Below are positions 9,601 through 42,708 of a DNA stretch of 50,498 nucleotides, piece after piece. The notes beneath the pieces were generated by a model. The model was not told the origin of the DNA, did not search any database, and worked only from the letters and a program-made list of their open reading frames with translations. Numbering within the stretch: the first letter of the stretch is position 1; every line of letters starts with the position of its first letter. A program made the translations under genes and the position numbers. The stretch comes from Klebsormidium nitens (lineage: Eukaryota > Plantae > Klebsormidiophyceae), in contig DF237570.1 in assembly GCA_000708835.1 (NCBI GenBank), positions 1-50,498 of the forward strand, in the 5' to 3' direction.

Positions 9601-12600
9601 AACGAGAAGCAGAGCTTACGTCACTTCTGGCAGAGCGGGACGCGGCAAACGAGGTGCGGATGAAAGAAGTGGCGGAGCTACGGGCGCAGGTGTCGGAACT
9701 GGAGCAGGAGAGACAGGAACTAGAACGGGAGAGGCAAGATCTGGCCGGCGAGCTAGAGTTGGTGCAAGCGGCGATTTTGGACGTCCGACAGGAGAAGAAG
9801 GAACTTGTGGCGGCATCCGAACTAGAGCAGGCGCATATTCATGAAGCTCGCCAGGAGAAGGACCGAATTGCGCAGGAGCTGTCGGATGTGCGGAACCAGT
9901 TGAGACGGACGTCAGGAGCGGAGCAGGAACTAGGGACGGCGAGAGAGGAGGCCGAGCGGATCCGGGTGGAGAGCGATGCGAGGTACAGGGGTTTGCAAAC
10001 CGAGTACGAGGCGCTTGCGACACGTTTGGAGTACGCGGAGAATGAAGTGGGTGCTTTGAGAGAGGCGATGGGTCGGAGAGAGGGCGAGCTGCGGTCAGCA
10101 GAAGACGCTCTTTCTGCTCTAAAAGAGGAGAAGAAAGCGCTAATTCAGAGCCAATCGGAGGAGAGTGAGAGACGGGAAGAAGCCCTGCGGCGAGTTGAGG
10201 TGGAGCTAACAAAACTGAAACAGGAGCGGGAGACGCTACATAGGGACCGCGAGGCCGCGCACAGCTCAGGTGCCGAAGCTGCTGCCGCTATTTCGGTTTT
10301 GGAGAGGGAGAAGAAGCATTTGGAGGAGGAGGTTGCGCGGCTAGAAGAGACGGCTGCGCAGCGGAGCGCGGCTCTGGAGGCGGCCAATGAGAGGGCTTCA
10401 GAAGCTGCAAACGAATTGGCTGAGAAAACGGAGAAGCTTATGGCTTTGTCTGCCGAGATCGCGGCTCTTCAGGCGCAGATTGCAGATGCGGCTTCCGAGA
10501 AGGAGGCGCTGGTGCAGGCTCTGAGGGAGAAGGAGCGCTTGGTGGAGTCACTGGCTGCTGAGCTGGAGGCCGCGAAGAGCCAGAACGAAGCACTGGAGCG
10601 CCAGGTGGCGCAAGCGGGGGACGCCTCCGAGGTCGCGAAGTTGAAAGAGGACCTAGCGCAAGCGCAGACCCAAACGGCAACGGTGCGGGAGAAACTTATG
10701 AAGGCCGTAAAGAAGGGCAAGAGCATCGAGCAGCAGAAGAAGGAACTAGAGAAGGAGCTGCAGGAGTTGAAGGGAGCGCCGGCGGCGACCGAGGGGACGC
10801 CTAGAGGTTCCGCGCGGCAAAGTGAGGAGCTGGGCGACGGGGGGGAAGCTTTAGAGGTGCAGGCGGAGCGGCGGCGGCTGGAAGAAATTTACGCCGCTCA
10901 GATGCAGCGGGTGGCGGAGCATTCCGCGGAGGAGCAACAGCGGCTGACGGCGGAGCGGGACGCGCTCGCGCGCGAACTAGAGGGGGCGAGAAATGAGCTT
11001 AGAGCGTTGGAAGCCGAGGTGCAGAAGCTCGGGGCGCGGATGCGGGATAAGGAGGAGGAAGCGATGGAGGCGCATCGCAAGGCAAACGACCTGGCCGTCG
11101 TGCTGGCGGAGAGCGCAGCGCGTGAGACGGAGCTGCGGAGGATGAGCGGGCACCTGCAGAACCAGGTAGGTTTGGCGCTTTGTTGTTGAGAGCAATTGGA
11201 AGATGTCTGCTGGCTGCATATTACGGGCGTACTGGCACTAATCTTGCAATTGCGGTTGCACAGTAGATATCCACGTCTGTCCTGTCAGACCGCGCTTTAA
11301 CACACCGCTCCACTCAGTAGAGCCCTCTCATTTCATTTCATGACGACCTCTTGCGTCGTTGCAGGGGAAGATTCAGTCAGCTATCAGCAGTGTAAGCGTC
11401 TGTCTGTGCATAGTTTCAAACGGGAAATTGTATCATACTCGACTGCGAACGTAAAAGCGACAGCGCTTATGGATACCAACAAACGTTCCTGTGAAGGAGT
11501 CAGTTTCCAAAATCAACTTCTCAGCCTAACCCACAAGAAGAGGCGTTTTCAAAACCACATCGCCTCTTTCACGTTTCCTCCCTCTCTTTCCAGGTGAAAG
11601 AACTAGAGGAGTCCATTACTGCCGCCAAGCGCAAGCGCCGCGAGTCCGAGCGCGCGCTCGAGACCCACGAGGCCGAACTCCAAACCCTCCAAACCTCGCT
11701 GACGTCACTCGAGCAGTCGAAACAGGCCCTCGAAGCGGACCTGTCCGCCCAGACCGCTCGCGCCGAAACCGCCGAGTCCGCGCTCGCCGCCCGGGAGGTC
11801 GAGATGGGCGGTGTGAATACTCTCAGGTCGGAGCTGGCGGCTGCGAACGAGCGCGTCCGACAGCTGGAAGAGGGCATTCACACCAGGGGGAAAGAGCTGG
11901 AAACTGTGGGGGCGCAGCTGGCGGAGATGACGGAGAAGCACCGGACGGCGCAGGAGAAAGCGCTCCGCGCGCGGGTGCTTTGGGAGAAGGGGAACAAGGA
12001 GGTGGAGAGATTGAAGGCGGAGGTTGCGAGGCTGGAGGAAGGAGGGGAGCAGCGCGAGAGGGGCGGCGAGGACGCGCAGGGAGAGGTGAGCCTCGCTTCT
12101 GGTTTCCACAAGGGAGAGATTGGAATATAATTATCCTTGTGAGTGCTCTATCAACGATCACAACTCGCCTTCTCGAGGTTACAAGTCCGCGCGAAAGAAT
12201 TGCAGGGATTTGAATACAACTTCTGCGATTATCCAGACTCAGTTTCCTTCCGGATCTTCTTCTGCCGTGGTTCAAGTACCTTTGTAGATGGTCGTTGGAC
12301 CTCTCAGTAGTTTGTTCCGTTCGGAAGGGGCGTCATTTTGACCCGTGAATTTGTGAGGACGTGTCAGAGCCCATCTCTTTCGTTTCCGGGTGACTTTCAC
12401 GCGTGGTGCAAACGCGGTGCATTGCTTGGTATACATCGTTCGATTCAGACTTCTGGAATCTCTCAGGAGTGTGTCAGTGCTAAAGAGGGCAAGGAGCTTG
12501 TGGCCTGTGAGAGCAGTCTCAAAGTGCCAGATGTGCTTCCGCCTTTTTACATTCGGCATGGAGAATTGTGTGTTAAGGCTGCAGGAGTGCCTCCACCCTC

Positions 12601-15600
12601 GCACGAACGCCTTCGTACCCAACACAATTATTGGTCTGAGCCAATGCGCACTTCTGCTGTTCCAGACCCGAATCGAACTTTTAAGTGGCACCTCGGGGCC
12701 CTGGTTCCATCTTCGCGCGACACGACCTTTCTAAGCAAGGAACAATCAACTTTCAAAAAGGATCTGAAAGAAAGCTTTTACTCTGTGCAGGTTCTCACGC
12801 TCCAGACTCGAGTTGAGGAACTCACCGCCGCCCTCGAGAGCGCCCGCAAGGAAGCCGAGGAGCGGCTCACTCACTCAGAAGACGAGAAGAACCGGCTTTT
12901 GGCATCGCTCGCCGACCAGCACGAATCCGCCGCCAGTGCTGTCCATAAGCTTGAACGGCTACAGGGACTGCTGCAGACCGAAGTGGAAAAAGCGGAGAAG
13001 TACGAAGCGAGGATTGCGGAGCTCGAGGCCACGTCAGCTGGCCACGTGGCAGACGTCGAGCGGCTGTCGGGAGACCTGGCGGCGCTGCGGGCGAGCCACG
13101 ACGAGGCGGGTGACGTCATCAAGGGTCTCCAAGAGGAGCGGGAAGCGGCGCGCGGGGAAACGGAAGGTCTGAGGCGGAAGCTGGAAGCTGCGGAGAAAGG
13201 GGGAGACGAGGAGCTGGTTTTGGCGAGGGAACAACTAGGCGCGGCGCAGAAAGAGGCGGCGGGACTGAAGGCGGCTTTGGATGCCCACGAGAAAGAGTAT
13301 GAAGCGAAGCTGAAGGAGTGGGAAGAGAAAGCGAGGGGGCTGTCAGAGGAAGTGGGGGCGTTACGTGCGCGAGAGGAGGAGCGGGTTGCGGCAGTCGCGG
13401 GTGCGGAGGCGCAGCGCGCAAAGGCGGTTGCGGCGGTGCAGAGCACCAAGAAGAAGACCCAGGAGATGGTTGCGCAGGTAGATTTCCAATTTGTCCTCTA
13501 CCCGGCTTTTCGTGACCCCCAAAAAACCTGTCAACTAAAAAGCTATTTTTGGTGGGCGGTGCAGAGCGCTAAGAACAAGACGCAGGAGATGCTTGCGCAG
13601 GTTAGTTTTGATACTTTTCCTTACCGATAGAAACCATCAATAATCAGCTTTTTTTACTAGCAGTATACACCTTGTTTGCAGATTACGCAAATCCATGAAG
13701 GTTCTTGCACACGTTTACTTCACCACCCTAGAACCCTAACCTATGTATGTTGTGTTGGTTTGACTATGATCAAGCTCTGTAAAACGGAAGGTCGTTCTGC
13801 TGGGCCAAAACAAACCTAGATCTTGATCCAAACATTCTTGCGCTCCGCACCTATATTCACCCTTATCTTCAAGCTAGCCCCGCCTGTCACCCCGGTTTGG
13901 TGGTGGTGATGACATGGCGCATGCTCATAGAGGCGACTTTTCTGTGGCGCAGATGCAAATGATCATTGCGGAAGCAGAGACTCTGAAAGCGGCGGTCGAG
14001 ACGCGGGATAACACTGTAGCGGAGCTGGAAGGACGGGTTGCGGAGCTCGAAAAAGAGAAGCGGGAGCTCAGTGCGAGGTCAGCGGGGCTGGAAGGAGAAC
14101 GAGAGGCGCTTCGACAAGAGATGGCGGAGCAATCCGCGCGGATTGAAACGTTGACGGCGGAAGCGCAGGGGGCGCTCGAGAGAGGGAGCCTGGAATTGGA
14201 CCAGCGGGTTGCGACGCTCGAACGGGAGCTGTCCGAATCGAGGCAGGAAGCGTCCGAAGCGCGCGAAGAGGCGTCCGAATCGCGCCACGTGGCGTCCGAA
14301 GTCCGTCGAGAGCTGTCCGACGTCCGGGAGCAGCTCAGGCAAGAACGCGCGAGGGCGGAAACGCTGTCGAAGCAACTGGAAGAGGCCTCGGAACGGCTCT
14401 ATAATGAGATAGCATCCTCACGGGGAAGGATCGATGCGCTGACGTCAGAGCTCGAAGAGCGCGCCCGCGAGGTTGGAGCGCTTCGGGGCCAGATTGAGCG
14501 GATCACGGAGCAGAACGCGGAACTAGAGGCGGGGTGGGAAGAGGAAGCGAGGGGCCGGCAGGAAGATGCGTCGAAGCACACCCTGGAACTCCAAGCGCGC
14601 ACCGAGGCGGTGCACGAGCTGGAGACACGTGTCCAAGACCTGTTGGGTTCGGAGGCGCAGGTTAAGGAGCTGCAAACCCGGGTCAGCGACCTGGAGGGTT
14701 ACGAAGCCCGAGTGAGGGAACTGGAGGGTTACGAAGCCCGAGTCAGGGAACTGGAGGGTTATGAAGCCCGGGTTAAGGAGCTGCAAGGCGTGGAGGTCCG
14801 GGTCAAGGAGCTGGATATCCGGGTTAAGGAGCTGGAGGCGATGCAAACCCGGTCGGAGGAGGCGCTGGATACGGTTTACCTCGAGCTTGCGGAGAAAGCG
14901 AAAGAGAGCGAAGGGCTCACTGCTTCGATCGAGCAGGAACGGGGAGCCGCCGCCGAGAAGGTCCAGAAACTAGAGGCGGAGCTCGACGAGGTCGTGCGCA
15001 AGCTCTCCGGGGTTAAGGAGGAGCTAACCCGGGTTAAGGACGCCCACGCGCAAACCCAAAAAACGTTCCGGGAGAGGGAGGAAGAAGTCGAGAGTTTGCG
15101 GCAGGAGTTGGCCGATTACGGAGCGGAAACTGCGGCTACTCGCGGGAGCGAGCTTTCGAGAGGCCCTGTCACGCCGAAGGTCGAAGCGCGGCAGCCGGCC
15201 GAGTTGAGAAACGACACGGGCAGAGGCCTCCCGACGTCGCCGCTGCAATCGACGGGGCCTCTGGTGGCGGTGGCCAGCGTGGCGCAGCTGCGGGGCGCGC
15301 TGGCGGCCCGCGAGCTGGAGGTTAAGGAGCTAACCCGGCGGTTAGCGGAGGTTAGCGAGGCGGCGAGGCAGGCCAAGGGCAAGGAGGACGCGGTGCGGCG
15401 AGAGCTGAACGACTTGGTAAGAGTTGGGCACGGATCACGTCGTCGCTGGTTGCTCGGATCTGAGGTCCTAAACCTTAAGACCCAAAACAGGATTATCTTC
15501 CTTCTTGACACCGATAGTACATATTTTTGCATTGGTTTGGCTGGACAGTCAAACATTCCGGTACGAGTAACAGCGGATGCTCAGACCTATTGCTCGTCGC

Positions 15601-17403
15601 TTTGCTTTCCGTTCTTGTCAAATCCATAATGCACCCTTGTACCCTTCTTCCAACAATGACCGACTATCGGCCCCTTTGAAAAATCGTCTGCACGAAAGGC
15701 ACGTTCGACCCTCCATCCGTCCTTAGTTGATTTTGCGCTTCAAACGCGACCCCATCTGCTCTATCAAGCCTCTCTTCCCCAGTCCTCTCTGTCCTCTGAT
15801 CTTGCTCAGGCTGGGCCTAACCCATGCGTCCCTTACCCCATGCCAGGCTTAACCCATGCCAGGCTTAACCCACTTTTTCTTTTCTCCCCCCAGCACCAGC
15901 GCTACCGGGAGCCCCCCCTGCCGGTGTCCACGATTCCACTGGGCTCCCCCATTGCCTCTTCTTCGTCATCCATGCCCCTCTCCACGCTCAACTCTCGAAA
16001 ACCGGGGCACTCCTCCGACCAGGAAATACTGCCACTTCTGGCGGACGACGACAAAGGTGAGTCCACCATCCCATCGCAACTTTCAAGTTGCTTGGTTTTG
16101 ACTCCTTCTCTTTCCTGGACCACAGTCCGCTATTTGGAGAAGCTCCATGGGCGTTAACGGACAATTCGCCAGGAAGACTGTGGGTCCATGGAGGTACTTT
16201 AGGTTCCTCTTTTTCCAACTTATGGAAAAGGAGTCTGCGCCGGACAGGAAGGGTACGAGGAAACGACATGCATGTTTTTGCTTGTTCGCATTTTCAGATT
16301 TTTGAATGCCGTGCCGAGCTGTCACTATAAGGCAGCGTCAGTCACAGCGTTGTGTCACCGCTGTTTTCTGTGTTTATGTGTGTGTTTTTTGTATCCTTTG
16401 TTTGTTTCGTACGTCCACAAGATTGCGGCTCGCGCATACAAAGCACACCAGTCACCTCTGTAATCCTCCCCCAGTATCTATCATCGGTTACCCGCAAGCC
16501 GCAATCCCTGTTTTCAGTTGACAGAAAAGCCCCAAGTCTCGATTGACTCAAACAGTCTGTGCATAGTCAACGGACAGACTACGTATGCAGCACCTTTCGA
16601 GACTCTCTTTGAAACTCTTGGAGCTTGCCAGCTTGCGCGTGCTTTCAGACTTAATGATAGCCTGGTTGCTCGGCTACGAAGCGCGTCCTTATTCCGGCGT
16701 CTTAACCTGCCCCGTATTCGCACAGAGCGGGGCATTGACACGGGGCCTTTTCCCAACGCAGAGAGCTACCTTCGCCCGACCACTGCGCTGCTACGAAGGT
16801 TCCCGCGCGCACTCCGGCCCCTCGCTGAGGGCGCCGATAGGCTATCGTGAGGCTTCCACTTCGTATTTCACCGCTTGGTTTGTTGTGTTATTCGCTGCCG
16901 TCAGTACGGCAATCTTTACCGAAATTACGTTCCTTTTGTAAAGTGGCTACTCTTCTGGAACCGGCAAGCGGAATGTAGGCAATCAATCAGCAGTGCGCGC
17001 AACGAGCGGGTTCCTTGGCAAGTTGAAAGAGCTCTTCGTTCTGCGCCGTTCCTCACTTTAAAACCTGGTCGCAAGCGGCTCAGTACAGCTCACCAACTTT
17101 TGCGGCCTTTGTCGGTTCTACGGTGGATTTACATCTCCACCCCGTTTCCCTGGGGAGACACGTGTCGTTCAGGGAAGCACGGGCGATCTGAGCCGTTAGT
17201 GCACGCTTGGTGTCTTGGGCCTATTTCACCATGTTCGCAGTTTTCGCAGACTGCCGCACAGCGTCAGAGTGCCTAACGCCTGTCCCTGTTTGGTTCGCAG
17301 GACGCTCACTGGGAGGACCCTCCAGGCACAGCCCGGCGCTCGACTCGCAGCCATGGCCTACTGCGTTGTGCTGCATCTCTTCGTCGTTTTTCTCATTTCG
17401 ACG
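609..17403 (+). CDS. TNO1: Giant tail-anchored coiled-coil golgin, TNO1-like (~3,730 aa). Exons: 609-647, 1075-1326, 1666-1812, 2118-5894, 6186-6525, 7092-8185, 8625-11165, 11594-12085, 12791-13477, 13953-15416, 15894-16056, 16762-16846, 17301-17403; terminal codons after 17403 not resolved
   Basis: All listed exons have GT/AG ends and consistent phases (11,184 nt). N-terminus MASKDLLAAGKKR|LEQFRQNK; two (R/K)EKLxxAVxKGK motifs (~3250-3290, ~10680-10720); C-terminus LADDDK|ESYLRPTTALLRRFPRALRPLAEGADRL|STLTGRTLQAQPGARLAAMAYCVVLHLFVVFLIST resembles the plant TNO1 tail (DEDK...VPRFTRPL...DRTLMRQPALRL + TM). E/A/K/L-rich heptads throughout. Confidence 0.85.
5349..5600 (+). repeat. Coding tandem repeat, 63 nt / 21 aa x4 (ELTQEVESAEALRKESEARVK)
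   Basis: Four consecutive gagctaacccaa/g-initiated units in exon 4, in frame. Confidence 0.9.
7190..7489 (+). repeat. Coding tandem repeat, 75 nt / 25 aa x4 (SALEKLREAEEKATQTEAALRKELT)
   Basis: Four near-identical units visible in DNA and in ORF 7055..8254. Confidence 0.9.
14691..14835 (+). repeat. Coding tandem repeat, 30 nt / 10 aa (LEGYEARVRE x3 plus degenerate copies)
   Basis: ctggagggttacgaagcccgagtgagggaa-like unit x3, followed by LQGVEVRVKE and LDIRVKE. Confidence 0.9.
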
Positions 17404-32031: not shown

Positions 32032-35000
32032 ATGTCCTCTTCCGGCAACGGGGCTCCTCCCCAACGGAGCCTCCGCCACGTGTTCTCCAAGCCAAAAGAG
32101 AAGCCAACCGAGGTCACTGACGCGGAATGGTACCTTGCCAAGTGGAAAACCAAGCCATGCCAGGTAGATCCCCCCGTTTGCTCGCACTCCCTGTTTATCC
32201 TGTCCGCTGAGAGTTACTGAATGCCTTCAATCAGCACAATCGAGCCTGTTTTGCATCTGGACAAAGCTTTGCTCCACTGTCCTCGGTTTTGGAATTAGAT
32301 CCACAATCTCGAGTGCTCAAACAATGGTGACCAGGCAATCAAATGCCCAGGAAATGTTGATTATCGTGCCCCTGTTAAGGCTATTGTTCCAAACTTTATA
32401 GGTGTAAAACTCACGACGGTTCTGAATGAAAGAGACAAATATCAAAACAAACGAGCAGACGATGCGGTGTCTCTAAATCGTGGTGATTCACCTCTGCCAG
32501 TTCACAGTCTGCCCCAACGCCTGGGGATGCCCGTACGCGCACGGCGAGAACGAGCGGAGGCGATCCCCGGTCAGTTTTACATATAGCGCAGAGGCCTGCC
32601 CAGACGCACCTGACTGCCCTCGGGGGGACGAGTGTGAATTGGCACACAACTACAACGAACAAGCGTTTCATCCCAGCGTATATAAGACGGTGCCGTGCGC
32701 GGACTTTCCGTGGCACTGCAACCAGGGGACCAGGTGAGAAAGCTGGGTGTGACACGTGGCAGGATTGGACTGTTTGTGAAGGTAAACGAGCTTGCGTTTG
32801 ATGCTCTCTCGCTGTCCAAATCGATTTACATCAACTAAGAGAGCAGGTGAGGGCTCTAGATGTGACACGTGGCAAGATCTGGAGACCTGGGTTGGGTCGT
32901 GAATGGTGCAGTTCTGTGGCTGTTTTCCTGGTACTGTTTTGGTGCAAACACGTTTGGGACCAAGGACTAAGTCCGCATCAACGTATCTGCTCTGAGGGAA
33001 ATGTATGATTGTCTCTGTCGAATTCCGGAATGAAGGGTCACATCCATGTGAGAGTCTGTCGTGTCTTTGACTGAGGACTTTCGGCTCTTTCTAGCTCACA
33101 ACAGGATGCGTTCCTATCCAGAGTGTTTGGCAGTCCATCCATTGCGCGTCAGTTTCTTTGGCAGCTATAAAAAATGGGACCAGAGAACTAGCGTAACTCA
33201 TCGTCCACTTTGTTGTCGTCTCGATGAATGTCGTTTGACAGTACTTGGTCCGCAAAGAACGAAAATTGGAAACGGCTGTCTCATTTTGCGCTTGTAAACG
33301 ACAGAGGACGTTCTTTGACAGCGCCGCGCTAGCCCTCAACCAAGCAGTCACGGCAGAGACCACAAAATGATTCAGAAAGTGGATCCTCATTTCTCCATAG
33401 CATGCCTGGAGCTTTGTTCCTAGCATCTCTAAACCCTTGCTTCGCGAGTGTTACCCGTTCTTTTTCTTTCCTTTGGAAGACTTCGGCAAGATGCAAATCA
33501 GCTTCTGCTGAAGAGGCAAGTAGTTTTTGACACTCATCGCGAAGCGCTGTTTTGACCCCTCTCTGTGGCAGGTGCCAGACAAGAACTTCCTTGTTGTCCT
33601 TGTTGCTCGACACAAATGCAAAGTCATCTTCGGCTTTTCATTGGTCAATCCCTCTATTGCCCGGTTGCACGTCGACATTCCACCTCCCTGCTCAACGCAC
33701 AAGGAAGATAAATAGAAGCAGCGGAAAAATGCGCAAACCCTACAAAACATCGAAAATCTTGGGGAGACCAAACGAGAATCTGTCTTCAACTCAGGTGTCC
33801 GAATGCGCACGGCTACCGTGACATGCGGCGGGCCCCTTCCGCTGGGCGCACTCGCCCCCGGCGTTCCGTCTCCGTTGGGGGGTTGGCTGACGTCACTCCT
33901 CCTCCACGCCACGTCAAGACCATGTCCAACATACCGGGGGATCGTACCGGGCGCTTTGGCGGGCCGACGCCAGAGGATTACGAGCGGGCTTCGAGCGGGT
34001 TCAAGGAAGGTTACGAGCCGGTTTCGAGAGGGTTAAGGGAGGGCTACGAGCCCCGGATTATCCCCCAGGAGGGGCCCGGTAGAACCAACCGGGGTCCGGT
34101 TCGAAACGGGCGGGGCAATAACACCGAAGAGGAGACCGAAGAGGACGACACGCCGCCCGCCGCGGGCGGCCAATCAGGGGGCTACACGTGGCAGCAGACG
34201 CCCGCGGAGGTGCGCGACGTGCTCGCCGCTGACCTCATCAGCCGGATGGTGACGCAGGCAGCGGAGGAGTCCGACTTGGAGAGGGCTGCCGAGAGGGCGC
34301 CACGTAGGCCCCCGGAAAGAACTTCCCGCAGCGGGGGGGCCCCGCGGCGGGGCAATGCGGGGGAGGGGTTCGTGAGGAGCGCGGCCCGAGAGATTGACAC
34401 GTGGGCCGTGGACAGCAAGGCGCAGAACGGCCACGTGCGCAGCTTTTCGGCGTTCAGCGTGCGAGGCCGTCAGTACGGACCCCCGGGGGATCCCCCTGAG
34501 GAGACCCCTTCGCCCCGGGAAGAAAAGCGTCCCCTTTCCAGAGACTCGTATGCGTCCCGCATCCGCGACCGGGGGATGAGTCTTGGAGGGGATCCCCCTC
34601 CCAGAGATTCGTATTCTTCTCGGGGGGTGAGTCTCGGGGGCGAGACTGAGTGGCAGGCCGAGTTGGCGAGCCTGCTGCGGCGCCACCCCAGCCGGGGAAG
34701 GGACCGGGGGATCCCCCTGGGAAGGGGTTCGTCCGTCCCGCGAGGCATGGAAGAGGAGATGAGAGCCTCAGCGAGAGCCCCCAGTGACCGGTGGCGCGAC
34801 GCCTCGCGCAGCCCAATGACACGTGCGCAACAGTTGCAGGCAAGGGATAAACAAGCTCACTGTAGATACACGCGCTGCTTATTCAGATTCATATTGCGAA
34901 CGAGGTTTGGTATCTAAGGTGGTCAGATAAGGGATCTGCGACCGTGGTCGTACAGTTGCTGGAGTATCCCTTTTGCTACAGTTCAGCGTCATCATTTGGC

Positions 35001-38000
35001 GAAGTCCGTTTTTGCAACTCTTTCCATCTTTCGAGGTTTACCATTTTCTTACCTGGACCGTATCTTCCGCCCAAATAGCAGCCGGTTAGATTCTGCTGAC
35101 CTCACGAGTTACTTTTCCACACTGCTTGATTTGTCGTTTCCAAGACCAAGTCCGACCTCTCCGCTTCTTCCTCCAATCAAATCGGATCGCGTCAGTATTT
35201 ATGCTTCAGAATTGAGAAGAGGTCAATACGACCCAAGTACCGTGCTCGTAGCATCTGCAACGAGGAGGCTTGCGATTGGAATTGTCAGAAACCTTTACAT
35301 GACCGGCAAGAATTGCGTAACGCTCGTGACAAGGTTTGTTTGATGAGAGGAGTTTCACTGAAGACAGTCGGACCGACCTCATTTCTTTGACCCCATCGCA
35401 GAACTTTCAAACTCCTGCACAATTTCGCTGAACCGCACTTAACACGTATAATTCCATGCTGGCTGAACGTCTCTTATTTGGCCTTTCACGATGCAGGCGT
35501 TGGTGGATGCGCAGCGGGGGGAGACGGACGAACTGCTCTCGAATCTCAACAGCCCTTCCCCGCGGGTCCTATCCCGATTCGCAAGCCCCCGACGGATGAC
35601 GTCAGCCGACTCCCCAATCCGACGGGTGATGTCAGCCGACTCTCCGACCGGAATCGTCTCACAGGCGCGGGACGCGTTCAGCCGGGCGCGAACTTGCCGC
35701 AGCTTTTCCGGGGAGGAAATGTCCCGGAATATTGTCCCCTCTGAACGGAAAAAGAACGATTCCGGAGATTCGGAGGCAGAGAGATATGCTGCCAAGGAAA
35801 AGCAAACGGAGAACGGAACGGACAGGGACAACGGAACGGGCAGAGAGTATTTGAATGAGGACGGAAACGGTGCAAACCGGAAACCGAAAGTGGTTGCGAA
35901 GCGGCCGGACTTGAAGGTGGAGATTCCGATGAGTCAGAGGTTGAGCGAGTTTGCGGCGTTTCAGACCGATACGGTCGCGGGTCTTCGGCGGCACCGACGC
36001 AACGATTCCGCCGTTTCTGAGATCCTACCCCCCCGGGGCGCAAAAGATCATCCCCCGAGTTCTGATTTCGAACCGAGTAAAGACGAGAAAGAAAGCAAGC
36101 GGGACGAAGAACTGGTGAAACGGCCAACCGAGGAGATGCGCCGAACCCGGAGAACGGCAGCGAAGTCGGTGGACTCAGTTCTACTTTCTCGGGGGGGTCC
36201 AACCGAGCCCATTCCCGAGCCTCCGACACCCCCCCCCGAGGGCCAGCTCGAGCCCGGGGTATTGTACACCCTTTTGCACAGCCCGGTTCCCCAAGCCGCG
36301 GAATTGCAGAAAAAGGTCGCGGCGATCTGTGAAGAGGAGGGCGTGGAGCTTCTCTGGACCCCAGTCGGCGATGACGTCACCCCGATGTCCGTACGGCACG
36401 GGGCTGACGTCAGGAGCGACGTCGAGGAGAGCCCCGTGGAGTCGCCGCAGGGGGGCGACGCTGTGGGTGCGTCTAAGAGCCCAACGGTCGCCGAAAAGGG
36501 CCGCAAACTCTCCCCCCTCCCGAGCCGCGCGCCCACTCCCCGAGTGACACGTGTCCCGACTCTTACTGGTCCACGTGGCGCGATCGCGTCCGCCGAGCAG
36601 AAGATCGCCGCGCTGTTTCAGGGGGTCGCTTCGACCACTGCGCGCTTCCCCTCGCAGTTTCTTTGGTACTTAGAGGAAGGGTTCGGGGGTAGGGAGCGGC
36701 TGGATTTGCTCAGGGGAAAACACGGGGTGGAGTTTACGATTTCCCTACCCAGTGATAGCCTGACGGTGTGGCTCGGAGGGGGGGGGGTGCACCGGAAAGT
36801 GATGGCGTACCTGAGGGAATTGGCGGGGGCGATGGGGGCGCCAGCGCAGTTGGCGCAGATTATGGAGGAGCCAGGGGGGGAGGAAAACGAGAAGGGGTGG
36901 GGGCCGACAGTGGTCGAGACGAACAAGACCGCTCTGGAACGGTAAGACTCTGCTCGAAGACCTGATAGAGGTTTCGTTCAAAAATATGAAGTACTTTGAC
37001 ATTGATGGAGGCGAGATGAGAAGCTTTTAACAATTGGTCCTGACTCGCACTTTTCTTCAACAGAATATTTGTCATTGAATGAGACGAACGAGACTGCGCT
37101 GGAGCGGTGAGACCGGGCGTCGATTTGTGCCCTTTGTTCGAAGCAGATTAGTGGACATTTGGTGTAGATGATGTTTCCTACGATGTGATATGTGGGGGTG
37201 AGAATCGGGTGAGATCTCTCGCTTCAATGAAATTTCCTAAAGATGACTTTGATGAAACGGAAAACCTTTCAATAGAGCCCATGAAGGAAAGGCTCCGGGC
37301 GGTTGCCTTCACTTGTGGTCAGCGTTGTAGTTCGATTACAAACACATACAGTCGTGCTACCCGTCAGAAAAGGCGTCATTGAGGTTGCGACAGAAGCCCA
37401 TAAACTGCTCTGGAAAGTTTCTGACGTCGACATTCTCGGAAATTGCTTTTTCTTACGCCTGACTCTCTGTCTTCCAGCGTGCTACCGCCGCACTGGAAGA
37501 AGGAGGGTCTTTCTTCCGGCAAGTGGCACCTTGTGGCCGTTCCGGAGGACAGCCCGGAATGGGCGGAATGCATCAAGAAGCTGCGAGGTGAGTAAGATCC
37601 CACGTGGCGACTGCTGGTTGGGTAGTTTGCAATCAACATCGCGGCGCTGACTTCGAATAATTGGACGATACTACCCCGTTTAAGCGCAGCCTTATACAAT
37701 TTTCTAAACCCTTTTCGCATCGACTCTTGCACAAGTTTTTGGAAACTAGTAATCCGGACATAATCTAGATTGAGCCGTTTCTGAGATGGAGCCGTTCTTT
37801 ACAAGTGCAGCCAGTGAGGCTCCAACCCCGCTTTACTCCGCCCCTACAATCAGGGAACTCCTTTATGCATGTTGTCAGCCAGAAGGTTCTCGCACCACTA
37901 CTCCGGACGCATATCACGTTCAAAATTGCTCATTGAAGCTTGCACCAAGCCCTTCGTACAGACCCCTCCCTCGTTTTTCCAGGTTCTCTTGCCCCCACTT

Positions 38001-40048
38001 CCGTGGTCCGCCTCCTCCGCTTCCAGAGCCCCCGCCAGTGGCAGCGCTTCACAAGCGAGCGCGAGCGCACGGAGGGGGCCAATTCACACCCCGGCAGTTC
38101 CCACTCGCTGTTTGCCACGTGTACCAAGAGCGAGGTGCAGGCGGTGTGCTCCGGGGGCTTCGCCGCCTCGGTCGCCAATGCCGACTCGGATGACGTCATC
38201 CTCGGGAGCATGTTCACATCGGAGGCCTGGCAGGTGTGTTAACCTTCTATAGGAAGCAGTTGCGTGGGCTTTTCCCGAAATGGCCATTTCACGATCGCAG
38301 AGTTCTTTGGCTTGAGCAGATGCGGAGTTGGTTCCTTACTCGATCTTGGGGCGTGACTGGAGTCGTTTTGGCCATGTCTTGGTTTGGATATTGCAAGGCC
38401 TCTTGAGATTTCGAAGAGCTCGTCTTGTCTCCTTGCGGGTTTGATCGTACCGGGCCCAGCTTGTCACTGACTTGATCGGAGTTTGTAGGCGGCGCGGCAC
38501 GCTCACAGGTATTTGAAATTCTAGAAATCTCTGCACATGCAATGGTTCAAAAAGTTTGTCTAGAGAGAAGATGGAAAGGACCGCACAACCCACCTCAAAA
38601 GCAAGCGTCAGAGAAAGTAGAAATGGACGGCCAATCTTGGCCCACTTCAGCCAAATGGATTCTTGTTTCCCTTGAGCTCTCAAAGTTCGTGTAGTAGTTT
38701 CTGGCATATCTCAAGAGGTATTTCTTCGATTCGAGTTTCACTGTCACTCAGTAACTGCAAGCTGTGGAAAGCTATGTCGAAAGTCAGTCCCTCCACGCAG
38801 TCGCCAAGTGATTGAACACAGGCCGAAATACTGTCCTTCAACACGTGTACATTGGTGGGTTTGCCACGCAGGCACTGCAGTTCGCGCCACGTACGAGCGA
38901 CGGGCTGCGCATTCTCGTGATGGTCGAGGCTGCTCTTGGGGGGGCATGGCTGGAGCGAAACCTGACCCTACTCACGGAGAAAGTGGACGGAGGGGGAGAC
39001 TTCGATGCGATCGTCGACAGTCTGACGAATCCACAGGTAAGACTTGGGCCCGCGAAAAGCACGAAAATGCTCAGACTCGCTGTCTCGGAAACCGCGAAGG
39101 TCTGACTTGCTGCAAATTTAGATTCCCAGAATGCTAAATACCAGGATTTCGTGGCGAGACAGATACGAAGGGCAATGATCGTTACGTGTTGAGTCTCTGC
39201 CGGCAGCCCCATTGCCTTGAAGCCTTACCTATTCATTCGCTACCTTTGAGATTCAATACACTGCTTGATACTGAGAAGCAACAGTCGACCGCCAACGTAA
39301 CAGGAGGAGCGCCGCATAAATCCCGCTCAGCCAAAGCGGGATTCTAAAATCGCACAGCCGTCCGATGCTTATTCAAAGGCTTCGATGCATCGGCTACACT
39401 GAGAGTAATTCCACATCGTCCATACCAAATTCATCGAACGGATTAGATTTGTGGCCGGCCACACTTTGTGCATGCTTGCTGGCGTCGACCAGCTCTGCAC
39501 CTTTTGTGCAACTTGGAGCGTCCGATCCGTTTTTCATCGGACGGCCTTGCGATTTTAGAAGCCCCGTATATTACGCGGCGCACCTCCTGGTAAGCCGCTG
39601 TATCGCCACTCCTTGTGAAGCCTTTTGACAACTCTTCTGAAACCTTCACCAAACCCGTTGTGGCTAACGTTTTCTAACCCACTTCTTAACCCCCGTTTTT
39701 GCCATCGCCCGCAAGCAGCATACCTATCCCGCATACGTCCTGGAGGTAGCGTCGGACCCCCGCGCCGACACTTTCTGAAACCTTCACCGAAACCGTGGCT
39801 GACGCTTTCTAACCCACCTCTTAACCCAGGTTTTTGCCATCGCCCGCAAGCAGCAGGCCTACCCCGCATACGTCCTGGAAGTGGCGCCAGATCCTCAAGC
39901 CGACGGGCCGGACGTCCATACGAGCTTCACGCTGCTGGAAGAGCCGTCCGCGCCGTCCGATGATGCATCTCCGAAACCCGACGACGTGGCAGAGCCTCCA
40001 GAAAAGCCGGCGGAAAAGCCGGCGCCAGCGTGTTGCGTCATACTGTGA
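32032..40048 (+). CDS. CCCH zinc finger - IDR - KH-like - PARP-like domain - CaaX protein (1,199 aa). Exons: 32032-32163, 32501-32733, 33795-34839, 35497-36941, 37478-37587, 37983-38233, 38872-39036, 39830-40048
   Basis: Exons total 3,600 nt with consistent phases. Splicing completes CCCH fingers across introns (KTKPCQ|FTVCPNAWGCPYAH; CPDAPDCPRGDECELAH; CADFPWHCNQGTR|CPNAH). PARP-fold motifs: LPPHW..LVAVPEDSPEWAECIKKL, RFQSPRQWQRF, SLFATCT..V..GGF, LRILVMVEAALG, FDAIVDSLTNPQ|VFAIARKQQAYPAYVL. Ends PACCVIL*. Confidence 0.85.
34840..35496 (+). other. Probable GC-AG intron in the CCCH-PARP gene
   Basis: CAG|gcaagg donor and tgcag acceptor join RAQQLQ|ALVDAQRGETDELL in frame; I saw no in-phase GT alternative nearby. 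Confidence 0.6.
39636..39900 (+). repeat. ~135-nt tandem duplication of the last intron end and start of the terminal exon of the CCCH-PARP gene
   Basis: ttctgaaaccttcacc...gtttttgccatcgcccgcaagcag...cccgcatacgtcctgga occurs twice; the upstream copy has cccc instead of ccag at the acceptor. Confidence 0.9.
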
Positions 40049-42708
40049 GGGTTTAGACGCTCGGACGGGTTTTGAAGTGGAGGAGCTCTGCACAGCGTCC
40101 AAAAGTGGTTCGGATGAAACGCATGATGACAAGTAAGTCGCAACGAGCTAGTGCAGGCTTCTCCTAGTATTACCATCAAAGGCGCGATAGCAGACGAGAC
40201 CGCATGCCGTGGTAGACACTACATATAAAGCTCAGCGTCGGATGGTACAGTATTGTTATGACGTATTTAAGTGTACCACTCTCCGATAGTAAGGCAGCAA
40301 ATACCGGGTCCCGTTGCGTTGGGTAAGGAGTCGGGACATGTGGGAAGCTGAAGTTAGTGGACCGGAAGGTTTCAATCGATCCATGGAGGAAGAGGACTCG
40401 GGACGTTCGGAAAGCTCATCGTAAACCCCCAAAAGTATGTGCTACATATAGAAGTCAAGACTCAAGCGTCGAGCTAGGTCGTATGTTGTTTGACGGCACC
40501 CAGGCAACTTGATGAATTACAGTGCTTTTAATTTTCAAGAGCGGCTTGCTAATCATCGACACGTACCGTACGTGTTGCTAGCAAACTTGATTAAAAGATT
40601 GAGCATGTATGTGGCGTGACAGGCCCGACGTAGCAGTTCTTAACGGCCTGGCCAGGCCGCGCCTGCTTGCCGCCGCTCGGTGATCAATAGCTTATATCGA
40701 CCGATCATGATATCTTCCTGACCAATATCCGGTTTGGGCAGCCGCATATCATTGTCTTCATGATCTTACTCTGATTGCCGCCAATTAGTTTCTAACCGAA
40801 GCCTTTTGATGCATCAGTGGCCGCCGCATAATCCCATGCCCCCGGGTGGCGCATGCCAGATCTGCGTCCGATCGCGATTGATCACTTTAAATTGCTTGAT
40901 GCATCAAACCAGACGCATCCGAAGCAAATGTTCCCGCTCGGTCTTGTCATCCTACGATCCAATGAGTTTCGGAACAACTGCCTGAGATACTAGCTCTACT
41001 ATCATCTGCTACCTTATCTTCCGAGACCACACAGACCGTCACCCCATCGGCGTCCAAGCTGGCAGGAATACCATTGGCCCAGCCTTCAAGGTCATGCGCA
41101 AGAGTGTAGGTGCATACATCAAGTCCTGCCAGGAGAGTTGGGCTAGCTGAGCTAGAGTGTCAAAGGTTGATATAGGAAGGATAGTTAGATAGTTAGCATC
41201 TCAGTACCATTGTTCGAACTCGGTCGGATCGTGTGTTGACACTCTTCGGGCCCATGGCGCAAGCTACGGTCCTTATAATAGAAGTATGAATGGATGAATC
41301 ACAGTTCGATCTTAACGGTCAGGATATCCAATCAGTATGCATGCATGTAAGTATAGTCGCGCGTCGATCTGCATGAACGTCCAGCTGAGCACATAATCAG
41401 CTAGCTTGCAGTTAAAATCAGTATCGCGGCTGTACGTCCCGGCGCGATCGGCCGGCATATCAAGGGGCAATGTGCGTGTCTGAGATTTCGCATGCGTGTT
41501 GCATGCGTGTCTGAGAGTTCACAATAGATTCCTACATGCATATGATACAAACGTACACCTAGCCTGATCGCGACATGACGTGTTGAGTCTGCGTAAGAGC
41601 ATATATTGATCGCGAGTATGCCAGAAGTATATGGCCGTATCGGGGATCCATGATGATGGTCACTTCTTTTTATGCGTACGTAGTATACGCGCTTAGGCAC
41701 CTGGGCCCATGGCGCAGAAAGTCGGAAGCAATTTCGGAGTTCGGGCTTCATCAAAAAATGTTTCTATACTAGTTACCAAGCATGGTTACTAACAACAAAG
41801 CAACATGACTAAGATGACATGCTGCCTCATCCATCATGTCTCGATTTGCTGATTGACCGGACGAATACCAATATGTCAGACCGTACCATGATGCCACTGC
41901 TCAGCGAAACTTGGGATACACTTTCATTTATTCGATTCTTTGCGATGTCGAATATCTAGGATATGTACCGCACCGGAACAATACATGATTCCGAATGGTC
42001 GAAAATTCTGATTATATCATCTAATACGACCTCTTTTGCCAAATCAAGTTGACGAGTTATTTAACGAATCCGACCATGATTCCGCCCTGAAAGCGCTCCC
42101 GAGCACTTTTCTGCCCGACGAAAGATTCTACAAGAGTGACCGGTGGACATTTTTGAATTCCGAAGGCAATCCAACAGTTATTTAATAAGTTTGAAAAATC
42201 ACTTTCCGAACCAAAAACAGGTAATGTAGCTTTCCGAGGGGCAAATATTCATTTATTTTCCGTTCCGGTACGGTATGTATATTTCAATAAAGCACAATTC
42301 GCCAGTGGTCGGATGCGCAGCTCCACAAGATGCAACGGGCGACTGAGAAAAGCACTGCTTCTTCATGACGCGTTTGATCTGTACGGATAAGCCATATGAG
42401 GTTCCAGTGCAGCTGCCTGATGCGTTCTCGACCCTCGGCGGCTCCTAGCGTCCAATCGCGATGATTAATAGGGTTCAATCGTAACATCCGTGCATGCATC
42501 CTGAGACCCGCGGGCCGCTCAGTCAAGTAGGAGGCGACAAATAACCGTCAGCGAGCGCGCACTACTGACGTCTGTCACCGGACCACAATACCTTCTGACG
42601 CTGACTACTCCAGCCCCGGTTCCAGACGGGGGTCTAGCTAACACGACGTCGACACATGCTTTGCGATCAACTTGTGGCCGTCTGCTTTAGTCTTCACACG
42701 CCAAGGCG

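Follow-up and report, generated by a model that had tools for sequence, protein, structure and literature searches.

A Klebsormidium nitens gene combining CCCH fingers, KH domains, a degenerate PARP-like domain and a predicted prenylation box

CCCH fingers of the Unkempt type have known relatives that regulate cellular mRNAs. In the human antiviral protein ZAP-L (the long isoform of ZC3HAV1/PARP13), the PARP domain and the CaaX box are both needed for membrane targeting and antiviral activity (PMC8568172), and ZAP itself arose late, within animals, from PARP12 (PMC4245714). PARP9, PARP10 and PARP14 have a layout in which a KH domain divided by a long insertion is followed by one further KH domain and an ART domain (Suskiewicz et al., 2023; PMC10450202). 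Diverged KH domains are able to bind proteins in place of RNA (PMC10450202).

The window analysed here is a 50,498 nt stretch of DNA (contig DF237570.1). An earlier note, made from its letters alone, had placed a ZAP-L-like protein in a plant-lineage genome, and the source is indeed Klebsormidium nitens. The anatomy that it described (three CCCH fingers, a disordered linker, a KH-like region, a degenerate PARP-fold domain and a C-terminal CCVIL) was borne out.

Gene structure, expression and relatives

The gene model was rebuilt independently and gave an 8-exon gene of 3,600 coding nt and 1,199 aa, equal in length to the model of the earlier note and ending A-C-C-V-I-L-stop. Its parts are as follows.

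32032..40048, + strand: whole coding region, 8 exons, 1,199 aa (rebuilt model, RNA junctions and public KFL_006210035)
32032..32163, + strand: exon 1, start codon and first Cys of finger 1
32501..32733, + strand: exon 2, all of finger 2, flanked by the remainder of finger 1 and the first half of finger 3
33795..34839, + strand: exon 3, completes finger 3 and opens the disordered linker, with a GC donor at its end
35497..36941, + strand: exon 4, remaining linker and the KH region
37478..37587, 37983..38233, 38872..39036 and 39830..40048, + strand: exons 5 to 8

RNA contigs from three independent studies show the introns between exons 3 and 4, 5 and 6, 6 and 7, and 7 and 8. The first of these is a GC-AG intron; its RNA joint (34834 to 35492) slides by up to 7 bases and fits 34839|35497 (GC..AG). 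The peptides joined across exons 1/2, 3/4 and 6/7 are encoded without an intron in two related loci, L001 and L003. The exon 1/2 peptide (...KPCQ|FTVCPNAWG...) is intron-free in both, and that of exons 3/4 (...RAQQLQALV...) is uninterrupted in L001. The third finger (C-x6-C-x5 | C-x3-H) is interrupted by the intron between exons 2 and 3, in this gene as in the relatives, and the splice is supported because only the joined exons encode a whole finger. RNA thus upheld four introns of the 8-exon model but left exons 4 and 5 unbridged: this is the sole junction without a bridging contig in the four runs, with contigs ending at 36784 and resuming at 37477. The model relies for exons 1/2 on the intron-less relatives, for exons 2/3 on the split finger, and for exons 4/5 on an intron whose position, phase (2 bases + 1 base), donor and acceptor are kept in L001, L002 and L003. 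Exon 5 also lacks its own start codon, and no in-frame Met comes in the ART half until well inside the domain. The Klebsormidium nitens gene at 32032-40048 is real, expressed and conserved.

The same gene is present in the public record as the K. nitens protein KFL_006210035 (P0004), labelled "hypothetical". This protein is identical to the rebuilt product except at residues 436-470, and is 35 aa too short because the public model misses the GC-AG intron. The expectation that the gene would be easy to miss therefore did not hold, since the annotation already has it as a single protein, though unnamed and shortened. For exon 4, a search of 1.8 billion representative proteins gave a single match, P0001. 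The full layout, ACCVIL included, was found again on two algal metagenome contigs, and a third, short algal metagenome contig carries part of it. The dN/dS ratios between L001 and L003 (fingers, 0.11; KH, 0.23; ART, 0.30; linker, 0.58) show that the fingers, KH region and ART domain are under purifying selection.

Two introns contain copies of neighbouring sequence.

37081..37113, + strand: copy, within the intron and at 85% identity, of the exon 4 end and its donor, repeat family D3
39660..39769, + strand: tandem copy of the intron 7/exon 8 boundary, likewise intronic and at 85% identity, repeat family D1

Use of the AG at 37064-37065 to include the first copy would place a stop before the ART domain; RNA depth over it was zero in the four runs. 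The second copy is without an AG acceptor.

Domains of the encoded protein

The following features were placed on the coding region.

32158..33810, + strand: three-finger CCCH cluster (C43-H58, C77-H93 and C110-H127), broken by introns 1 and 2 (phmmer against the PDB, near-threshold Pfam)
36253..36621, + strand: split KH-like domain, beta-alpha-beta, a disordered insertion of ~60 aa, then beta-alpha (AF2 model, Foldseek)
36631..36831, + strand: type I KH domain (KH2), beta-alpha-alpha-beta-beta-alpha with a G-F-G-G (GxxG) loop (AF2, VIA-align)
37478..39889, + strand: PARP/ART-like pseudo-enzyme domain, exons 5 to 8 (37478-37587, 37983-38233, 38872-39036 and 39830-39889; phmmer against the PDB)
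40031..40048, + strand: C-C-V-I-L and stop, a CaaL box with an adjacent Cys (direct reading of the DNA, RNA contigs)

In phmmer searches of the PDB all three fingers match Unkempt ZnF4-6 (5ELK, E 1.8e-13); other matches are 5ELH (E 4.7e-4) and TTP/TIS11d (E 0.02), and Pfam zf-CCCH_UNK-like matches fall slightly under the cut-off. On these alignments the N-terminal module is a cluster of three CCCH fingers of the Unkempt type, which agrees with the TZF-type origin proposed for it earlier. A disordered linker of ~590 aa, low in complexity and rich in R, S, P, E and G, separates the fingers from the KH region.

The KH region was modelled with AF2 on a two-sequence alignment, with pLDDT 70-88 across the folded parts. 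For KH2 (pLDDT 78-88), VIA-align placed the model on type I KH domains with Z 7.2-8.4 and rmsd ~2 A over 65-70 residues, and 50 of the 50 chains among the matches listed align with KH or KH-like (OOEP-type) domains. Its loop reads GSGG in P0001, and GxxG is kept in all orthologues. KH2 as modelled is thus a type I KH domain whose GxxG loop is intact. The first, split KH-like domain is less certain as modelled: its elements lie at 52-89 and 150-174 in AF2 model m50fcea8b0bd1, and the Foldseek tandem-KH matches of the region (vigilin, IMP KH34, N4BP1, KHNYN and mouse PARP14 1400-1534) have weak E-values of 1e-2 to 1e-4. The KH pair has no PDB or Pfam match, so homology to the KH pair of PARP10/14 is without sequence support.

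The top solved match of the ART domain is the PARP-like domain of ZAP (4X52/2X5Y, E 2.8e-11, end to end), followed by PARP15 (4.5e-6), PARP12 (5.5e-6), PARP10 (1.1e-5) and PARP14 (4.7e-5). ZAP is likewise the first match for the ART piece of L001. The domain reaches only 19.6 bits against Pfam PARP, under the 26.7 cut-off, and scores 0.95-0.96 to PARP clusters by protein-atlas features. The fold assignment rests on homology to solved structures because the AF2 model of the partial domain has a pLDDT of only 45. By this comparison the domain is homologous to those of clade-3 PARPs (ZAP, PARP10/12/14/15). Aligned to PARP15 and ZAP, the catalytic triad is changed from H to A, Y to M and E to V (A-L-V in L001 and L003), with T in place of the glycine following the triad His and A in place of the nicotinamide-contacting serine. 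The NAD+-contact positions H, G, Y, S and E therefore read A, T, M, A and V, and the claim of a dead catalytic site holds for all key NAD+ contacts.

The CCVIL region is variant-free in the covering RNA contigs. L001 and L003 both keep ACCVIL, even though the 45 residues ahead of it have diverged, with indels. Prenylation of CCVIL is predicted from the motif, and the stretch ahead of the box is only weakly basic.

Proposed role and its alternatives

We think it probable that this expressed nuclear gene encodes a catalytically dead clade-3 (PARP7/9-15-like) PARP that serves as a lipid-anchored RNA-binding adaptor. The finger cluster and KH domain would bind single-stranded RNA. The ART domain, presumably unable to bind or use NAD+, may be a protein-docking or effector module, as is seen with the inactive PARP domain in ZAP-L. 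Given the terminal Leu, Cys1196 is the predicted site of geranylgeranylation by GGTase-I, and Cys1195 may carry an S-acyl group, by analogy with RhoB-type CCaaX tails. So anchored, the protein would hold or regulate the mRNAs that it binds, acting on their decay, translation or localisation on the cytosolic side of a membrane. An antiviral or RNA-surveillance role is speculation by analogy.

That role would be expected if the protein were functionally equivalent to ZAP-L, sensing viral or transposon RNA from a membrane anchor and recruiting decay or translation-repression factors in innate defence. The shared design logic (an RNA-binding CCCH module combined with an inactive PARP domain and a prenyl box), the position of ZAP as top solved match and the requirement for both PARP domain and CaaX in ZAP-L antiviral activity (PMC8568172) favour such a sensor. 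We nevertheless consider it unlikely, as the domain dN/dS values of 0.1-0.3 indicate purifying and not diversifying selection, the fingers belong to a type whose known relatives act on cellular mRNAs, a WWE/PAR-binding module was not detected, and ZAP is a late animal derivative of PARP12 (PMC4245714), so that a ZAP-like score cannot mean orthology. Alternatively, the diverged KH domains and dead ART could dock partner proteins at a membrane, a ubiquitin ligase being one candidate (compare PARP9-DTX3L), with the fingers minor or regulatory. The inactive PARP-like domains of RCD1/SRO and PARP9, among others, work through partners, the split KH has no recognisable alpha-GxxG-alpha unit in the AF2 model, and protein contacts are known via diverged KH domains (PMC10450202). 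A pure protein scaffold is distinctly unlikely, however, when the fingers are the most constrained part (dN/dS 0.11) and all three of them align to a module solved with RNA bound, and when the GxxG loop of KH2 is kept in all orthologues.

Two further explanations were weighed. Clade-3 PARPs that lack the glutamate (H-Y-I/L) work as mono-transferases (PMC2964712) and the domain is under purifying selection, but residual NAD+ binding or ADP-ribosylation is most improbable: beyond the Glu, the His, the next Gly, the Tyr and the nicotinamide-contacting Ser are also replaced, in all three or four relatives, and the top solved relative is the inactive ZAP domain. It is also very unlikely that exons 1-4 and exons 5-8 form mostly or only separate products. 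The unbridged exon 4/5 junction in four runs would fit such a split, as would the stop reached two bases into the intron from the exon 4 frame; the copy at 37081-37113 could be a poison exon yielding a short ART-less isoform, compare ZAP-S and ZAP-L. However, exon 5 lacks a start codon and its half has no in-frame Met until deep in the ART domain, contigs begin exactly at the exon 5 acceptor (one has three unmatched letters before it), donor, acceptor and phase are kept in the three related loci, and the public model joins both halves. Consistent with a single product, the stop after exon 4 belongs to the donor consensus in both species and the RNA contig breaks fall at a G-rich stretch.

Comparison with known PARP and CCCH families

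The N-terminal module resembles Unkempt in that residues 32-127 align to ZnF4-6 across three fingers, inter-finger motifs included, and its near-threshold Pfam matches are UNK-like and AtC3H23-like. There is one three-finger cluster here as opposed to two in Unkempt, the RING domain is absent, and the finger spacing (C-x4/5/6-C-x5-C-x3-H) is unlike the plant RR-TZF pattern. Neither the Unkempt nor the plant TZF families have the C-terminal KH, ART and CaaL parts. The RCD1/SRO proteins (clade 2) are also of the plant lineage and have a non-catalytic PARP-like domain, which they use for interactions. The WWE and RST domains were absent in a Pfam search, in contrast with RCD1/SRO, and SRO clusters are among the more distant protein-atlas neighbours (score 0.85-0.87). 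A PDB sequence search with an E limit of 10, in a library whose inclusion of an RCD1 PARP-domain chain is unconfirmed, returned no RCD1/SRO chain, whereas clade-3 PARPs scored 1e-5 to 1e-11.

The analogy with ZAP-L stood for the RNA-binding-type CCCH fingers at the N-terminus, the inactive C-terminal PARP domain and the terminal prenylation box. The ART domains are homologous (~24% identity across ~170 residues, E 2.8e-11), with Val at the Glu position in both and closely similar residues around it, D-x-x-V-D-x-x-x-N-P-x-V-F-x-I ... Y-P-x-Y-V. The triad is A-M-V here and Y-Y-V in ZAP. The Unkempt-type cluster stands in contrast to the four-finger NZAP domain, and two KH-type domains occupy the place of the fifth finger and WWE pair (MZAP). 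The lipid box agrees only in part with that of ZAP-L: a prenylation box is present, but CaaL predicts geranylgeranylation whereas the CVIS of ZAP-L is farnesylated. Without a WWE/MZAP module this is therefore not a ZAP/PARP12-type protein. Membership of the ZAP family was rejected on this absence and on the PARP9/10/14-like core layout.

The split KH, KH and ART core follows the order described for the vertebrate clade-3 proteins PARP9/10/14. An N-terminal RNA-binding module on a long linker is shared with PARP10, Foldseek matches the KH region weakly to residues 1400-1534 of mouse PARP14, and ART matches to PARP10/14/15 lie at about 5e-5 to 5e-6. The differences from this group are CCCH fingers in place of the N-terminal RRMs, an ART domain that is dead here and active in PARP10, PARP14 and PARP15, and the prenylation box. 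As ZAP arose from PARP12 within animals, the overall design must have been assembled independently. The convergence on ZAP-L proposed earlier thus holds for the fingers and lipid box, which look independently added, but not for the ART domain, which is homologous to clade-3 PARPs with ZAP as its top match, nor for the core, which agrees with PARP9/10/14. In summary, the protein is a new domain combination inside the clade-3 PARPs that is partly convergent on ZAP-L.

The gene model, its transcripts and its relatives

We rebuilt the gene on the + strand from ORF pieces and splice signals. The model has eight exons.

Exons of the rebuilt gene, from ORF pieces and splice signals
32032-32163, + strand, exon 1
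32501-32733, + strand, exon 2
33795-34839, + strand, exon 3
35497-36941, + strand, exon 4
37478-37587, + strand, exon 5
37983-38233, + strand, exon 6
38872-39036, + strand, exon 7
39830-40048, + strand, exon 8

The exons total 3,600 nt and encode 1,199 aa, ending in A-C-C-V-I-L-stop. An earlier note made from the sequence had given the same length, which our independent model reproduces, and its observation as a whole (CCCH fingers, a degenerate PARP domain and a CaaX box in one spliced gene) is confirmed. Intron 2 splits the third finger, which is whole only after splicing in all species compared.

RNA contigs from four runs of three studies were placed on positions 34080-40079. They bridge four joints (34839|35497, 37587|37983, 38233|38872 and 39036|39830), with a word depth of ~3-10 over exons and zero over most intron sequence. 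The contigs carry no sequence variants and extend over the stop codon region. The joint 34839|35497 is a GC-AG intron; it was reported at 34834->35492 with 7 ambiguous bases, which fits GC..AG. The RNA therefore bears out the eight-exon structure at four junctions in this interval but not at E4/E5 (exon 4 to exon 5), the sole junction there with no bridging contig in the four runs. Around E4/E5, some contigs stop within G-rich sequence at 36761-36784 and others start at 37477, one of the latter with three unmatched letters ahead of its start.

Exon 4, searched exhaustively against 1.8 billion representatives, gave a single relative, P0001 (830 aa, 46% identity); outside this algal group the KH/linker region therefore has no kin that the search could detect. 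P0001 is located on L001, a JGI metagenome contig. There are further close relatives on L003, a contig of the same sample, and on L002, a Logan contig. A tblastn search with the 1,199-aa model shows the whole gene in the same order on these loci, with identities of 70-74% for the finger exons, 37% for the linker and 53-66% for the ART exons (those of the PARP catalytic-fold domain); the KH region is also conserved. L001 and L003 have the counterparts of E1+E2, E3+E4 and E6+E7 each as one unbroken stretch, which confirms these joined peptides independently of RNA. Intron 4 is conserved in donor, acceptor, position and phase in L001, L002 and L003 (the donor is GTAAGA in K. nitens and GTGAGG in the relatives, and the acceptor TTCCAG is kept), and exon 5 has no start codon. 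It is highly probable that exons 1-8 belong to a single transcript.

Introns 1, 3 and 6 are absent from the relatives (L001 6931-7245, 7875-10364 and 11614-12042), so introns have been gained or lost within this algal group. The gene copies on L001 and L003, both from JGI metagenome 3300060284, are ~87-89% identical in DNA and each adjoins a PRP3 splicing-factor gene; their sources may be a pair of related algal species, or of haplotypes, in one sample. A tblastx comparison of the L001 and L003 flanks with the window gave nothing at E 1e-8, showing no local synteny with K. nitens, and the case for orthology is therefore the collinearity of the whole gene. Word-indexed searches, which distant kin could escape given length and word limits, matched P0002 alone with an ART piece (143 aa) and only the query itself with the full ART region of P0004, the public protein of the same gene. 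A metagenome search with an alignment of exon 6 detected no relatives in a collection apparently lacking the contigs that carry L001 and L003. With the searches used, relatives were detected solely in Klebsormidium-like algal contigs. In AlphaFold DB the protein is the representative of its own fold cluster.

P0004 was retrieved by a word-indexed search with P0001 and is encoded on the contig of 50,498 bases that makes up the window. It is listed as "hypothetical protein KFL_006210035 [Klebsormidium nitens]" (1,164 aa), with the UniRef name "C3H1-type domain-containing protein", and is identical to our model apart from missing residues 436-470 (35 aa). The public protein is short because the annotation took another donor than the GC donor of intron 3 (34840-35496), which is backed by RNA contigs and by L001. 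The public model thus needs correction for the GC-AG intron. KFL_006210035 has no precomputed Pfam domains. The earlier note regarded the gene as easy to miss; it is annotated as one protein, but that protein is nameless and its PARP domain is unrecognised.

Several other features were seen in and around the gene. The last 26 bases of exon 4 and the donor (36916-36948) are duplicated 165 bases downstream at 37081-37113 in intron 4, with 85% identity. This copy has a possible acceptor ahead of it (AG at 37064-37065) and, if included, would introduce a stop codon upstream of the ART domain and so possibly yield a short isoform; the copy had no RNA coverage. A 110-base tandem duplication (39660-39769 and 39795-39904, 85% identical, spacing 135) spans the last part of intron 7 and the first part of exon 8; the AG acceptor has been lost from its upstream copy, which has the look of a dead pseudo-exon. 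Two runs have low-depth RNA contigs (word depth ~3-4) within introns 6 and 7 (38283-38770 and 39170-39360), for which unspliced precursor, DNA carry-over and antisense transcription are possible sources. Contigs in three runs, including a 3.8-kb, high-depth contig of run X2, touch the gene by just 18-19 G+C-rich bases (34482-34500 and 36269-36286) and continue into unrelated sequence; these contacts are probably chance or low-complexity matches. Elsewhere in the window, there is a run of very long + strand ORFs with strong purine skew at 1944-15629 (1,319, 399, 854, 430 and 571 aa). Their sole Pfam matches are weak and of coiled-coil type (CENP-F, GAS, OVT1), and the run is probably one giant coiled-coil protein gene.

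The finger module and the KH region

Residues 1-140 match fingers ZnF4-6 of Unkempt (5ELK) in a PDB sequence search, with E 1.8e-13 over all three fingers and their linkers. Matches to Unkempt ZnF1-3 (5ELH; 4.7e-4) and to the tandem fingers of the TTP family (~0.02) are weaker, and the ZAP finger domain gave no match in this search. Pfam places UNK-like and AtC3H23-like families just under threshold, and zf-CCCH_PARP12 is not among the finger families found. In the gene model the three fingers are spaced C-x4-C-x5-C-x3-H, C-x5-C-x5-C-x3-H and C-x6-C-x5-C-x3-H. The 5ELK match and the UNK-like Pfam result indicate that this is an Unkempt/TZF-type RNA-binding cluster, not one of ZAP/PARP12 type, in agreement with the TZF-type origin suggested earlier. 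The fingers are the most constrained part of the protein compared between L001 and L003 (dN/dS 0.11, against 0.23 for the KH region). The linker (residues 131-718; 14% Arg, 10% Ser, 10% Pro, 9% Glu and 9% Gly, with few hydrophobic residues) is poorly conserved, with 37% identity to L001 and relaxed constraint (dN/dS 0.58).

An AF2 model of the product of 36100-36939 has pLDDT 70-88 in its folded parts. In this model the second KH unit, KH2 (model residues 178-244), has the full beta-alpha-alpha-beta-beta-alpha order of a type I KH domain, with the loop G-F-G-G (G-S-G-G in relatives). VIA-align of KH2 gave Z 7.2-8.4 and an rmsd of ~2 A over 65-70 residues with KH domains of Rrp40, MEX3C, vigilin, Nova, IMP, FBP and PNPase, and all 50 chains listed align at a KH or KH-like (OOEP-type) domain. 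The modelled assignment of KH2 is well supported. The first KH unit is modelled as beta-alpha-beta, ~60 disordered residues and then beta-alpha, and KH2 is separated from the ART domain by ~30 residues.

Foldseek with the KH pair found tandem KH proteins (vigilin, E 1.8e-3 and 3.5e-4; IMP KH34; N4BP1; KHNYN) and, as a weak match, residues 1400-1534 of mouse PARP14 (E 0.048). PARP9, PARP10 and PARP14 have a common core of an insertion-split KH, a second KH and then the ART domain (PMC10450202; Suskiewicz et al. 2023). The modelled split KH and KH ahead of the ART domain would have the layout of this core, the split KH and any kinship with the PARP10/14 pair depending on the weak Foldseek matches. 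The KH region had no PDB match by sequence search, and no sequence-level match, Pfam included, to the PARP10/14 KH pair. Because a sequence-level match is absent, we keep the modelled KH-KH-ART likeness to PARP9/10/14 as a lead, short of demonstrated homology.

The ART domain and the C-terminal tail

The complete ART domain of P0004 (residues 905-1125) was compared with PDB sequences using phmmer.

phmmer matches of the P0004 ART domain in PDB
ZAP (4X52/2X5Y), E 2.8e-11, residues 4-172 of 173
PARP15, E 4.5e-6
PARP12, E 5.5e-6
PARP10, E 1.1e-5
PARP14, E 4.7e-5

The ART fold is therefore recognisable by sequence, with full-length matches to solved clade-3 domains. In the same search PARP1-3, tankyrase and PARP16 had no match at E up to 10, and nor did RCD1, whose PARP-domain chain the library may not include. 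The L001 piece equivalent to exons 6 and 7 had the ZAP PARP-like domain as its only significant PDB match (4.4e-5), to which a small profile of the piece added PARP10; an AF2 model of this partial domain had pLDDT 45 and is unusable as fold evidence. Protein-language-model neighbours of the domain are PARP clusters (0.95-0.96). Pfam PF00644 (PARP) scores 19.6 bits, below the 26.7 cut-off, and Pfam found nothing for the PARP part on single-exon ORF pieces because these are too short. Identity is ~24% to ZAP and ~21% to PARP15. ZAP owes its better score largely to fewer gaps and to a C-terminal stretch of close similarity, so we do not read a specific sister relationship from it. Within animals, ZAP itself derived from PARP12 (PMC4245714).

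Alignment to PARP15 and ZAP shows that the catalytic histidine is replaced by A, the next glycine by T, the tyrosine by M, the nicotinamide-contacting serine by A and the glutamate by V. The H-Y-E triad is thus A-M-V in K. nitens, bearing out the degenerate catalytic residues reported earlier, and A-L-V in the relatives L001 and L003. The H-Y-[I/L/V/T] motif with intact NAD+ contacts, which marks active mono-transferases, is absent. From established PARP structure-function knowledge, we take these replacements to be the loss of every conserved NAD+ contact, which makes the domain a pseudo-enzyme. On sequence grounds the protein is a clade-3-type pseudo-enzyme of the PARP family, with a PARP7/9-15-like ART domain. 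Between L001 and L003 this domain has 21 non-synonymous and 22 synonymous differences and a dN/dS of 0.30, and an intron used for comparison is 87% identical in DNA. Judged by these substitutions, the ART domain is constrained despite its lost NAD+ contacts.

The C-terminal CaaX claimed earlier is present and conserved, and is of CaaL type. C-V-I-L-stop lies at 40034-40048 and is the same in L001 and L003, and all three loci that extend to the C-terminus share ACCVIL. The preceding 45 residues vary in sequence and length, and the retention of ACCVIL after them argues for function. C-V-I-L is a textbook CaaL box of the GGTase-I substrate type: a Cys, two aliphatic residues and a final Leu make it a predicted substrate. 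The cysteine before the box resembles the palmitoylated cysteine of RhoB-type CCaaX tails. We infer from this motif that the tail would be lipidated.

Proposed role and comparison with known systems

We propose that the protein is most likely an RNA-binding adaptor anchored to a membrane. In this scheme the fingers and KH2 would contact single-stranded RNA, with reach or multivalency coming from the long disordered linker, and partners would dock on the dead ART domain. Geranylgeranyl, perhaps together with palmitoyl, would hold the complex to the cytosolic face of a membrane. A specific antiviral role, which the earlier note raised by analogy with ZAP-L, is a narrower reading that we consider improbable for this protein. 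A broader idea is that an RNA-binding head, linker, split KH, KH and ART domain may be an ancient eukaryotic clade-3 design common to streptophyte algae and vertebrate PARP10/14, and that it independently became a dead, geranylgeranyl-anchored RNA sensor in the Klebsormidium lineage, a second invention, in the plant lineage, of the way in which ZAP-L deals with foreign or selected RNAs at membranes. This is a speculation that we think has a small chance of being right.

Clade-3 PARPs, the mono-transferase or inactive and largely immune-related branch, were described as present only in animals, Dictyostelium and Tetrahymena and absent from Plantae, with CCCH-bearing PARPs confined to animals (PMC2964712; Citarelli 2010). 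A later survey placed clade 3 in all supergroups (Perina 2014), so the presence of the domain type in an alga is not itself new. We did not find this domain combination described in the literature on Klebsormidium and PARP, nor listed in PARP evolution reviews. K. nitens, a streptophyte alga, has a conserved and expressed clade-3-type pseudo-PARP. The ART domain looks most ZAP-like and the core PARP10/14-like, and a finger cluster for RNA binding and a lipid box have been acquired. Should the KH-KH-ART core prove homologous, the module would have arisen before plants and animals split. If the protein acts on RNA at membranes, it would be a natural replicate of the ZAP-L design and would help to tell which features (the dead ART domain, the lipid anchor) that function requires. 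Plant RNA biology gains a candidate membrane-tethered mRNA regulator.

The architecture is not that of RCD1/SRO, RR-TZF or Unkempt proteins. RCD1/SRO proteins (clade 2) are WWE - PARP-like - RST, whereas Pfam finds neither WWE nor RST here. Plant RR-TZF proteins have C-x7-8-C-x5-C-x3-H-x16-C-x5-C-x4-C-x3-H and an arginine-rich motif, and the spacing here differs. The compact three-finger CCCH cluster is common to this protein and Unkempt (5ELK, all three fingers). However, Unkempt has two clusters and a C-terminal RING, whereas there is one cluster here and no RING family in Pfam.

Among the PARPs, PARP10 likewise carries an RNA-binding module at its N-terminus, attached through a long linker, and PARP13 and PARP9 are likewise pseudo-enzymes. 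The ZAP-L-like interpretation of the earlier note stands in part. Membership of the ZAP/PARP12 group does not hold, given the finger type and the missing WWE pair: the NZAP-type fingers of ZAP, PARP12 and PARP7 (clade 3E) are replaced here by Unkempt-type fingers, and the finger and two WWE domains (MZAP) that precede their ART domain are absent, with no WWE at E up to 10 in the whole protein (Pfam). The folded region in the MZAP position models here as KH domains. The C-terminal CaaX of the long ZAP isoform gives membrane targeting, and the corresponding tail here is a conserved C-V-I-L of CaaL type. ZAP-L depends on both its PARP domain and its CaaX box for localisation and activity (PMC8568172), and the anchored-adaptor logic that we propose would match that shown for ZAP-L.
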